Assembly (NCBI GenBank): GCA_009103225.1
Contig: RHPI01002402.1
Location: forward strand, 839,412-903,411
Length of the DNA stretch: 64,000 nucleotides
Direction of reading: 5' to 3'
DNA from: Chlorokybus atmophyticus
Lineage: Eukaryota; Plantae; Mesostigma and Chlorokybus algae
The translations under genes and the position numbers were made by a program. Positions within the stretch are counted from its first letter, which is position 1, and each line of letters starts with the position of its first letter. Of this stretch, positions 39,934 through 45,930 are shown one piece after another. A model generated the notes under the pieces. The model was not told the DNA's origin. It did not search any database and was given only the letters and a program-made list of their open reading frames with translations.

Positions 39934-42210
<2,277 letters not shown>

Positions 42211-42900
42211 TGTGCACGCCACCGCCGCCGCCACCGCCACCGCCGCTCAGGCAGCTGCAAACTCGCGCCAAACACTACTGAGATGAAACACCTCAGCATT
42301 GAGGATTAGTTCACTTCGGTCAGTAGTTCGTTCAATTGCTCGTCCAATGCGTCGGTCGTCTTGACAGTGCTGCAGCAAGCAGTGAGCGGCGGCGAAGGCG
42401 TGAGCGGTGTTTGCCAAGCTCGGAGGATGGACGACCAACGAGCTGACTGGTTGGCATTGCGTGGATTAAGACCCTTCACGACGCTGGTGTTTCGCTCGTG
42501 AAGTGGGCATCCGCCTTTCTTCTGCGCAAGCTTTTGGTTGACGTCAGCGACGGTAAGGGTGGGAGTGACGCTTGAATTGACAGCAGGCATGCTTGTGTCA
42601 ATCACGTACAGCTTTGAACACCACTTCCTTTGGGTTTGTGAAACACACTCATGGCAGGTTGAGGTTAGTTGTTACAATCGCCAGCAACAGCACGTGGTCT
42701 TGCCCGCAAGTGCTATCCCTGTTTCTGTCTGTGGCTGAGGATATCTTTGCTAGGGTGTCATGCTTTCATGGTGTCATGCTGCAAGACTGACAAGCCCTCT
42801 CTCGCTCCTAATCTCATGCATGCATGTTTGCTGCAGCACGTCGTTTGTTGATGCTGTTGTTGGCGAGCTGCCGTAAAAGTGCAGCAAGCAGCTTAGCAGC

Positions 42901-45232
42901 ATGCAGGCAGCAGCAGAGCACAACAGTCACACAGTTGAACGAAACTCTCTGCCATCAGAAGCGGCGACAACAGCAACCGCTGCAACAGCAGAAGACACAG
43001 TCAACAATGACAACAGCAATGCACCGTCACAGCCTACAACAGCAACAGCAGCAACAAGCAACAAGCAGCAGAAGAAGAATTCTTGGCCTGGACGTAAGAA
43101 AGCATCCAGCGGTAGCAAGCGAGCAAGGGAGGAAGGAGGAGGAAATGGAGGAGGTGAAGGAGCGCAGGTGGCCGCACACAAGCCGAAGTTCTGTCCAGGT
43201 GGTTGCGGGCGTTACGTGCTAGCGTACTCCCGTCACTGCGCTGGTTGTGGTTGGCGCAGGGTATGTGTGTAAGCGCACAGGAGGTGATGGTACTTCTCTC
43301 CTCTTAGACCCGTCCTGTTTGTGTACTAGCTTGCTTGATTGCCATGTATGCATTTGCTTTGGCAAGAACTTGGTCGTGCATGTAAGACTTGGTCAATTGC
43401 AGCCAACCAAGCCACACGATCACTTCCGGCTCTGTCCTGGCTGCAACCAGCGCATTGGCAGAGCAACCGTTGTACATGCAGCATGCGGCTGGCGAAAAGA
43501 AGGGCATGTCAAGAAGCCGCGCGTGATTACAAAACCCTGCCCCTCTGCGTCGTGTCGCAAGGTACATGAAAGTGCTGGTGTGATGCTGGGTCACACAACT
43601 TGGTTCACCCATTCAGGTTGAGAGTGAGCTCTCTCTTTGCTTCACAGGTTGGTCACAGAATACACAACAAGGTTGCGGCTTGCGATCGCTGCGGGCTTGT
43701 CATGCGCCCGGAATGCGACAGCACAGCAGCTTTGCTGCGCAGGCAATCAGACACCACGCGCAAGAAGAAGCGAACGCAGCAGCAGCAGGCCTCACAGTCT
43801 AACCCAACGACGGCCACAGAAACAACCACCTTAGCACTTGTTCCAGCATTGCAACCAGAGGTGTTACCACGCTCGCTACCTCCCTTGAGACACTGCACGA
43901 GGCCACAGCAGCAGAGGCCTCCAGCAGAGGCAGCTGTGCAGCTCGCAGCGTACAGCGATTCCGGCCTGCTGCCGACGTCTCTGCTGGAGGCGTCAGTCAG
44001 GCGCTTGCCTCATCACAACGGACCACAACTCGCCTATCGCGTGTGCGGCGCCATTGCATTGGACCTCCTGGACGAGGCCAACCGAGACTTGGAGACCTCC
44101 AATGTAACGGTGATGTTCTGTCCTGGCTTCAGGTCCACCATGATGGACGCAAAGGTAAAGTGTACTCACCAACAGTGCATGCATGCGCCAAAAAGCATGC
44201 TGATTGGCACACACACCTAGTTTTAAATTGCAGCGTGCTAACATGAGACCCAACTGCTGAGCAGGCTCAAGCGTTGGCAACGTGGGCAGAGGTCACCGGC
44301 AGGAGGTGCGTTCTGTTCGACTACTCCGGGCACGGAGAGTCCCTCGGACAATTCTTGGAAGGTAATAACTACTGATTCTCATGTGTTTTCAACACAATTG
44401 CTGCCGGCTCACGCATCATATTCATCATCAGGGTCGGCAACGCAATGGTTGGAAGACCTGCTGTCGGTAATGCAGGCAGCTGCACCCGGACGAGTGGTGC
44501 TCATTGGAGATGGCATGGGAGCGTGGTTGGCGCTGCTTGCTGCGCAGCGCGCACCGGCTGCAGTGGTCGGCATCGTGGGCATTGCATCCGCACCTGATTT
44601 CACTGAGGACTTCATTTGGAACCAGCTCTCTGATGCTGAGAGGAGGTGTGGCCTCGGTCGCAATATGCTGCTGGCCCTAGACACTACTGTTGTCCGCATT
44701 ACACGTGTTGCTTGTGTCCAGGACTTTGCAGGAGCAAGGGTTGATCTGGTACACTCGGTACGGCCTGGACCCTTTCCCGTGCTCCCTCCGCCTCATTCTG
44801 GACGCAAGGCAGCATCTTCTGTTGCGCAGTGACAGGAGACTGCTCGTGAAGTGTCCTGTCAGGTTACTGCATGGCATGGAAGATCAAGTAAGGCTTGCAC
44901 AATCTGAAGGGACCATCCAACATAGCTTAGATATTGTCTTCCAGTCTCATCCCCTGTGCATGCGAGTTGGTTGGTTTGCGCTGATCTGCATGTCCTGCAC
45001 AGGAGGTTCCTTGGCAGCATAGCCTGCGCCTGTTGAACACGTTGGACGCTGCTGACTCCAGCGTTACGCTTGTGAAGGTGAGCAGTCATATGCCACACGA
45101 AGTTGGAGTTGCCGTATACCTGAAGTCGCTGAGTGCGTTTGTTGCCAGGGCGCTGACCATCATTTTCTTCGGACCGAGGATCTGTCTCACATTACGTCTG
45201 CACTGGAGGCCATTCTGGTGACCATCAATTGA
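42901..45232 (+). CDS. Triple zinc-ribbon protein fused to an ABHD10-like alpha/beta-hydrolase domain with nucleophile Ser replaced by Gly (putative pseudo-enzyme)
   Basis: Exons begin 42901-43260, 43403-43561, 43648-44154 and continue to TGA 45230-45232, all joined by GT-AG in consistent phase. Zn ribbons: CPGGC..CAGCGW, CPGC..HAACGW, CPSASC..CDRCG. Hydrolase motifs: QLAYR, VMFCPGFRSTM..KAQAL, FDYSGHGES, QWLED, VLIGDGMGAWLAL, GIASAPDF, RLLHGMED|EVPW, GADH. Confidence 0.85.
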
Positions 45233-45849
45233 GGACTTGACATGTGGCAGCGGCGTGGCTGTACTTCAGCTGCACATTGTTAGTTTAATGAAGCAGTCCA
45301 CAACCTTGTATTGGCAAGGTGCCCAAGTCAGCATGCTGCGGTGGATCGGCTGCATGATGCTTGCAGTCGTTAGTGCAGAGTGCAAAGATGCGCTTGCAAG
45401 CTGCTGGGCGTAGCAATTGTAGATGAATGAATCTGGCCTTAGCGGTTGTAAGTGGATTTTGCCAGCCATTGCTGCATCATAGGTCATGTTCGGTAAATGT
45501 ACGTTGCTTGCATGACCACTTTGGAAAAGGTGCTGTTGACCATCACACGGATTTGCTGATGAGATTTCGGCATATGCCCCACTCTTGTCAGCTGATTCAA
45601 TAGCGAGTATTGCGTCGCTATGTAAGCCTGCAAAAGGTTTTGGAGGCTGCATGAAGGGTTGTAATCAACAATTCATGCATGATGAGTAAGCAAATACGAC
45701 GATTACCATATCTGAGCGACTACAATCCCGCTTTAGACAAACCCCCCCCCCAAAATCCATGGGGGTTGTTGTATTAGGGCTGTATTTTGCCCGTAAAAGA
45801 GGGGTAACAAACCAAGCCCCCCACCCACCCACCCCGAGTTTCGCGCGGC

Positions 45850-45930
45850 NNNNNNNNNNNNNNNNNNNNNNNNNNNNNNNNNNNNNNNNNNNNNNNNNNN
45901 NNNNNNNNNNNNNNNNNNNNNNNNNNNNNN
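45850..45930. other. Assembly gap (81 N) with low-complexity poly-C/poly-G flanks
   Basis: Run of N. The flanks (~45740-45849 and 45931-45940) resemble low-quality read ends. Confidence 0.98.

Follow-up and report, generated by a model that had tools for sequence, protein, structure and literature searches.

On its forward strand, a 64,000-nt stretch of the genome of the alga Chlorokybus atmophyticus (assembly GCA_009103225.1, contig RHPI01002402.1, positions 839,412 to 903,411; hereafter the window) carries a gene of eight coding exons in which three putative zinc ribbons precede a predicted α/β-hydrolase domain resembling ABHD10, with a glycine in the place of the catalytic serine (Table 1). 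A non-coding 5′ exon, exon 0, lies upstream. The ribbon-hydrolase gene is a real, expressed Chlorokybus gene, with ribbons and hydrolase fused in frame on one transcript. The sequenced strain, CCAC 0220, is now named C. melkonianii (PMC8611356).

A single transcript joins ribbons and hydrolase

Contigs from four public runs (X1 to X4, of which X1 and X2 belong to different studies) were aligned to positions 42601-45600. A single 1917-nt contig from X1 runs from 42958 to 45544 with 0 differences from the window and with all seven introns removed at GT..AG boundaries. X2 confirms introns 3, 4 and 7, and its record 6 matches 44430-44637 without a difference. X3, which bears the same organism label, contains a 2239-nt contig about 95% identical to the window from which all seven introns are likewise removed; its divergence of about 3-7% per exon fits the between-species distances in PMC8611356, and it is taken as the transcript of a sibling lineage. 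The spliced contigs of X1, X2 and X3 show these runs to be RNA-derived. X4, under a different organism label, yielded unspliced pieces at ≥99% identity, for example 44578-44773 spanning intron 5; these are genomic DNA from this strain or one almost identical to it. In the transcript contigs, the 3′ untranslated region (UTR) extends to at least 45544.

Since one contig joins exon 1 to exon 8, the ribbons and the hydrolase lie on a single mRNA and not on two separate complementary DNAs (cDNAs). An earlier reading of this locus, made from the sequence alone (hereafter the sequence-only reading), had also proposed a fusion, on the grounds that ribbon 3 and the start of the hydrolase share an exon. 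This is correct for the second knuckle of ribbon 3 (CDRCG, in exon 3) but not for the first (CPSASC), which lies in exon 2; the split is immaterial to the fusion because the cDNA contigs join the parts.

Table 1. Features of the ribbon-hydrolase gene and its neighbour (positions in the window)
Feature	Position	Strand	Description
Ribbon-hydrolase open reading frame (ORF)	42901-45232	+	8 exons; 1662 nt, 553 codons plus stop
Exon 0 (non-coding 5′ exon), 3′ end	42524..42552	+	Donor GT at 42553; loose contig ends match 42526-42551
Exon 1	42901-43260	+	ATG; A/T/Q-rich low-complexity N-terminus (codons 1-63), basic patch, ribbon 1
Basic patch RKKASSGSKRAR	43093-43128	+	Exon 1
Ribbon 1	43192-43254	+	Exon 1; C98-x3-C102-x10-C113-x2-C116-GW
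Exon 2	43403-43561	+	Ribbon 2 and first knuckle of ribbon 3; very basic
Ribbon 2	43433-43492	+	Exon 2; C131-x2-C134-x10-H145-x2-C148-GW
Ribbon 3, first knuckle (CPSASC)	43538-43555	+	Exon 2; whole ribbon C166-x4-C171-x13-C185-x2-C188-G
Exon 3	43648-44154	+	Second knuckle of ribbon 3, Met192, RKKKR, P/Q/T-rich linker, first strands of hydrolase
Ribbon 3, second knuckle (CDRCG)	43681-43692	+	Exon 3
Met192, start of public model	43702	+	Exon 3
RKKKR patch	43759-43773	+	Exon 3
First strands of hydrolase, including PGFRSTMMDAK	from about 43999	+	Exon 3
Exon 4	44265-44361	+	Hydrolase; conserved DYSGHGES motif
Exon 5	44432-44645	+	Hydrolase; nucleophile elbow and conserved APDFTE motif
Nucleophile elbow G400-D401-G402-M403-G404	44506-44520	+	gga gat ggc atg gga; ggc at 44512-44514
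Exon 6	44722-44887	+	Cap region; triad Asp in LLHGMEDQ
Triad Asp, D500	44882-44884	+	Exon 6
Exon 7	45003-45077	+	Hydrolase
Exon 8	45149-45232	+	Triad His in GADHHF, then stop codon
Triad His, H530	45158-45160	+	Exon 8; family consensus at this place GDHRxS
First coding exon of isopropylmalate/isocitrate dehydrogenase gene	41674-42240	-	Head to head with the ribbon-hydrolase gene

The hydrolase domain and the loss of its catalytic serine

Searches were made with individual exons and with the public protein model jgi/Chlat1/7870/Chrsp66S00577, which comprises exons 3-8; the joined coding sequence served for codon numbering. Sequence matches of Chrsp66S00577 in the PDB were SM0281 of Sinorhizobium meliloti (8TRF, 3.9e-43), a putative hydrolase of Agrobacterium vitis (3LLC, 1.8e-39) and mouse ABHD10 (6NY9, 8.5e-34), and 1076 homologues were found, the best at 1e-57. 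The Pfam families Hydrolase_4, Abhydrolase_1 and Abhydrolase_6 all matched the public protein over their cut-offs. Taken exon by exon, Pfam gave weak α/β-hydrolase matches for exon 5 only, and exon 3 by itself had no sequence match in the PDB. An AlphaFold2 (AF2) model of public-protein residues 90-362, built with 58 homologues, reached a predicted local distance difference test score (pLDDT) of 92 and a predicted template modelling score (pTM) of 0.91, and its best Foldseek matches were 8TRF, 6NY9 and 3LLC at template modelling (TM) scores of 0.82-0.92. Judged by sequence similarity and by this model, the C-terminal half is a well-folded α/β-hydrolase domain with a cap, of the ABHD10/SM0281 family; the PDB, homologue and Foldseek matches agree on the ABHD10-like hydrolase that the sequence-only reading had recognized, and the structure prediction that it had suggested as a check returned an intact fold.

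Homology to ABHD10, SM0281 and 3LLC extends across the whole domain of roughly 260 residues (E 1e-34 to 1e-43), and the Chlorokybus protein has the DYSGHG, APDFTE and LLHGxxDxxVP motifs and the catalytic His in common with them. The 119 closest homologues among the matches listed are stand-alone proteins of 218-311 residues at 39-49% identity, the ABHD10/SM0281 type being a stand-alone protein of about 250 residues that in eukaryotes is mitochondrial, whereas the Chlorokybus protein has a 290-residue N-terminal extension with the three ribbons. These closest relatives come from Rhodospirillales, Azospirillum, Rhodobacterales and Rickettsiales, mouse ABHD10 being further off (30% identity in structural alignment), and homologues in a genome scan were overwhelmingly alphaproteobacterial. 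The closeness of alphaproteobacterial relatives is in keeping with a family that arose in alphaproteobacteria or mitochondria. The scan had GSSMG among its search patterns and is mute on variation at the elbow. ABHD10 itself is a canonical Ser-His-Asp enzyme, a mitochondrial S-depalmitoylase (PMC13625376).

The nucleophile elbow of the Chlorokybus protein, GDGMG, aligns residue by residue with GSSMG/GSSLG of 8TRF, 3LLC and mouse ABHD10. Compared with these proteins, the nucleophile Ser has become Gly, the Ser before it Asp, and the Arg after the catalytic His is replaced by His. The ggc codon is identical in the RNA-type assemblies of both studies, X1 and X2, neither of which has the serine codon AGC in its place, and the elbow glycine is thus no assembly error; the replacement of GxSxG seen in the genome by the sequence-only reading stands. 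That reading had also raised the question of whether homologues lack the serine too. They do not: the Ser-Ser pair (GSSMG) is present in all 119 of the closest homologues listed. The X3 piece of the elbow exon carries 8 differences in 216 nt, and simple arithmetic puts the chance of any of them touching the ggc codon at about 11%. The other two members of the triad, Asp500 (HGMEDQ) and His530 (GADH), are retained in an intact frame, as first described, and align with the invariant D and H of ABHD10.

In an alignment of 120 proteins (the Chlorokybus protein plus the 119 homologues), 74 columns are at least 90% conserved and 21 are invariant. The Chlorokybus protein departs from the consensus at 16 of the 74 (median for the others 2, maximum 12), and three of the 21 invariant columns are changed, namely both elbow serines (S to D and S to G) and the Arg that follows the catalytic His (R to H). 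Of the 16 departures, eight fall in one or another of four loops of the catalytic site, which are the elbow, SDMxG, DGTIGxW and DHRxS (p≈0.03, with classes drawn post hoc); they include DHR to DHH and SDMxG to STMMD. Most of the cap motifs (APDFTE, W, Y, P, R, H) are retained. Asp401 was considered as a shifted nucleophile and rejected: the flanking glycines are in the canonical register, and Asp in the position before the nucleophile (Nu-1) is ordinary in GDSAG-type enzymes. This residue is common in active enzymes, as in the GDSAG motif of the HSL family, and is non-catalytic there.

Three putative zinc ribbons in a basic context

The three repeats of paired Cys/His knuckles interleaved with basic patches, on which the sequence-only reading had based its ribbons, are all present. 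They occupy 95 residues, at about 20-25 residues apiece, with knuckles about 10-13 residues apart, and the 53 residues of exon 2 include 12 K/R and 5 H but 2 D/E. A six-frame scan of the 64-kb window for the strict pattern CP-x(1,3)-C-x(9,13)-[CH]-x2-CG gave two matches, each of them in this gene, and missed the remaining copy because intron 2 splits it. A looser four-ligand pattern gave 44 matches among the 128,000 residues translated.

Protein-language-model neighbours of ribbon 1 and of exon 2 in the ESM Atlas are small CPxCG, Zn_Ribbon_1 and L40e-type ribbons, with scores of 0.85-0.91 that we treat as leads only. Small CPxCG-type ribbons (Zn_Ribbon_1/DZR, ribosomal L40e) resemble the Chlorokybus modules in having two knuckles 10-12 residues apart in a unit of about 20-25 residues, and, like them, carry CP..C and CG signatures in strongly basic surroundings. 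RanBP2-type fingers have a similar C-x2-4-C-x10-C-x2-C spacing, but their W and N are absent from the Chlorokybus ribbons. Ribbons 1 and 2 differ from these small ribbons in the G-W that follows the last Cys, and ribbon 2 also in the His that serves as its third ligand.

The combination of these ribbons with a hydrolase was sought in several ways. When exon 3 was searched exhaustively with HMMER against 1.84 billion cluster representatives, the gene's own public model was the only match, indicating that no relative is detectable that combines ribbon 3 with the linker and the hydrolase N-terminus. Among the 120 homologues listed there is no equivalent fusion, and none exceeds 362 residues; a literature search for ABHD10 with a zinc ribbon, or for SM0281, found no description of such a fusion. 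The architecture that the sequence-only reading had failed to recognize from known proteins thus proved equally unfamiliar to these searches. An ABHD10-derived pseudo-hydrolase fused to zinc ribbons is new, although α/β-fold pseudoenzymes as such are already known, and it has been seen so far in one genus.

The public gene model and the 5′ isoforms

Chrsp66S00577 is 362 residues long and begins at Met192, just past ribbon 3, without any ribbon. Exon 3 is 100% identical to it, and every exon piece from 43702 on occurs in it, in order; a lookup of contigs encoding Chrsp66S00577 found none on record. Upstream of Met192, the main frame is open for 191 codons through two phase-0 introns, an event with a chance of about 1e-4 by simple arithmetic, (61/64)^190. 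The public model is probably 5′-truncated by these 191 codons.

At least 29 nt of exon 0 are seen in X1 and X2, and 207 nt in the X3 orthologue; its start probably reaches back to about 42346. The 5′ UTR intron that leaves exon 0 at 42552 has two acceptors, 42836|42837 and 42958|42959, both of which occur in X1 and in X2. The isoform made with the first acceptor retains ATG 42901, preceded by an out-of-frame ATG at 42851, which lies 50 nt upstream and opens a 124-codon ORF that ends at 43222 and overlaps exon 1. The isoform made with the second acceptor loses ATG 42901; exon 0 offers no in-frame ATG to serve it, and none occurs in frame until Met192. This isoform may be unproductive or regulatory. 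Together, the upstream out-of-frame ATG and the ATG-removing isoform may explain the annotators' choice of Met192, and the 5′ isoform arrangement is the main uncertainty over the amount of long protein made. The ORF from ATG 42851 was rejected as the real frame, since it stops at 43222 and the differences between X1 and X3 show no synonymous bias in that frame. Within exon 0, ATG 42426 opens a further upstream ORF of 24 codons (42426-42500).

Selection on ribbons and hydrolase

The selection tests draw on 40 of the 84 differences between X1 and X3, those listed, and are partial. Over codons 64-186, which hold the basic patch and the ribbons, 8 of the 11 listed differences are synonymous, as against 24% expected (p≈0.001), and this bias is confined to the main frame, with none in the alternative frame. 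Indels in the X3 coding sequence net to multiples of 3 (-4/-2, +1/-1, +3, -2/-1); those in the 3′ UTR measure 5 and 29 nt. Exons 4-7 differ between X1 and X3 at 15 of 551 positions (2.7%) and are free of indels, compared with 65 of 931 (7.0%) in exons 1 and 3 (p=3e-4). The piece comprising exon 8 and 3′ UTR differs at 18 of 373 positions and contains 34 gap letters (p=0.10). By these comparisons, the ribbon region is under purifying selection, and the divergence of the exons, rather than a ratio of non-synonymous to synonymous rates (dN/dS), favours constraint on the hydrolase domain that has lost its serine.

Discussion

The fusion of ribbons to a serine-less hydrolase raises the question of what such a protein might do. 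We propose, with a probability of roughly 0.55, that the gene encodes a 553-residue, non-catalytic ABHD10-type protein that serves in binding or as a scaffold and is tethered by its zinc ribbons. The N-terminal half would be disordered and strongly basic, with three tandem mini zinc ribbons of four Cys/His ligands each and two K/R patches that resemble nuclear localization signals. The apex of the elbow has no side chain, so that an acyl-enzyme intermediate presumably cannot form, and we infer from this that the domain is non-catalytic. It would instead act as a binding or scaffold module, working through a cap and pocket that are mostly conserved and perhaps binding an acyl or ester ligand, or else a protein that is acylated. 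The basic ribbons and K/R patches may anchor it, probably within the nucleus, to nucleic acid or a partner molecule.

The α/β-hydrolase fold has given rise to several pseudoenzymes and receptors, among them the neuroligins and cholinesterase-like adhesion proteins (Ser to Gly), ABHD5/CGI-58 (Ser to Asn) and GID1 (His to Val). They preserve the fold with its pocket but have lost one member of the triad, and have turned the domain to binding, as we suppose for the Chlorokybus domain, which would in principle stand beside neuroligins (likewise Ser to Gly) or ABHD5 as an α/β-fold pseudoenzyme. They represent unrelated subfamilies of the fold, however, whereas the Chlorokybus protein appears to be ABHD10-derived; we know of no such pseudoenzyme that derives from ABHD10 or is fused to zinc ribbons. 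An expressed Ser-less ABHD10 relative with putative nucleic-acid-binding ribbons would add a new case of the α/β-hydrolase fold reused for binding, from one of the streptophyte lineages most distant from land plants, although the reach of the finding is modest, confined as it is to one small genus. We speculate, in a more ambitious version that is rather doubtful, that the protein is an ABHD10-derived nuclear "reader" which Chlorokybus species have maintained over tens of millions of years, in which the three ribbons would hold a catalytically dead, acyl/ester-binding pocket on RNA or chromatin and 5′ splicing that removes the start codon would provide an on/off switch. On that reading it would be the ABHD10 family's first non-catalytic member, in a domain architecture not described before.

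Several observations weigh against a non-catalytic binding protein of full length. The retained Asp and His, as judged from the alignment, would leave room for water-based or otherwise unusual chemistry. Pfam found no zinc-ribbon family in exons 1-3 at E ≤10, and exon 2 alone, modelled by AF2 from its single sequence, reached a pLDDT of 57, too low to be informative. The selection tests are partial, as noted, and over codons 2-21 the X1/X3 changes are 11 non-synonymous against 1 synonymous, such that the extreme N-terminus seems unconstrained. Finally, neither 5′ isoform is straightforward, the one carrying ATG 42851 ahead of the main start and the other lacking the main start altogether.

Three alternatives would explain parts of the same evidence. 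The serine may have been lost recently in this lineage from a gene that still has an intact, transcribed ORF and has become functionless. Decay of this kind, which we consider unlikely, would account for a terminal branch longer than any other in the family tree (1.09 versus a median of 0.17), for the 16 changes at conserved columns and for the unproductive-looking 5′ isoforms and upstream AUGs. A long branch is expected, however, when a eukaryote is set against densely sampled bacteria, and the frame is intact through eight exons in two lineages about 3-7% apart per exon, the hydrolase exons having no indels and less divergence than the linker and N-terminus, and the ribbons showing their synonymous bias. 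The slow evolution of the hydrolase exons, together with the intact fold, the largely conserved cap and pocket motifs and the retained Asp and His, would suit an improbable case in which the domain is still an enzyme, though a non-canonical one, with a His530-Asp500 dyad activating water or with another nucleophile, such as Asp401 beside the elbow apex or the Cys in the FCPGF oxyanion loop, and with ribbons that only target it. Against such chemistry, the apex of the elbow is Gly, Asp at Nu-1 is non-catalytic in GDSAG enzymes, and the glycines still present at Nu-2 and Nu+2 make a register shift that would put Asp at the apex unlikely; the domain has further lost the invariant Arg that follows the His, together with other residues of the catalytic loops.

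It is also quite unlikely that the true product is the public 362-residue form starting at Met192, perhaps with an organelle-targeting leader, and that the ribbon ORF is an untranslated leader. The public annotation does begin there, the isoform with acceptor 42958|42959 lacks ATG 42901, ABHD10 relatives are mitochondrial (PMC13625376), and the S/T/R/P/Q-rich stretch of about 100 residues after Met192 could pass in composition for a transit peptide. An untranslated leader sits poorly, however, with 191 open codons across two phase-0 introns (chance about 1e-4), with the main-frame synonymous bias over the ribbons and with three regularly built Cys/His modules, and many AUGs precede Met192 in either isoform.

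The neighbourhood of the gene offers two further observations. Upstream, the dehydrogenase gene listed in Table 1 was identified by its Pfam match to Iso_dh (E 3e-34); with exon 0 probably starting near 42346, the 5′ ends of the two genes would lie about 100 bp apart, which suggests a bidirectional promoter. Downstream, the assembly contains a gap of 81 N at 45850-45930, about 300 bp past position 45544, where the 3′ UTR of the contigs stops.

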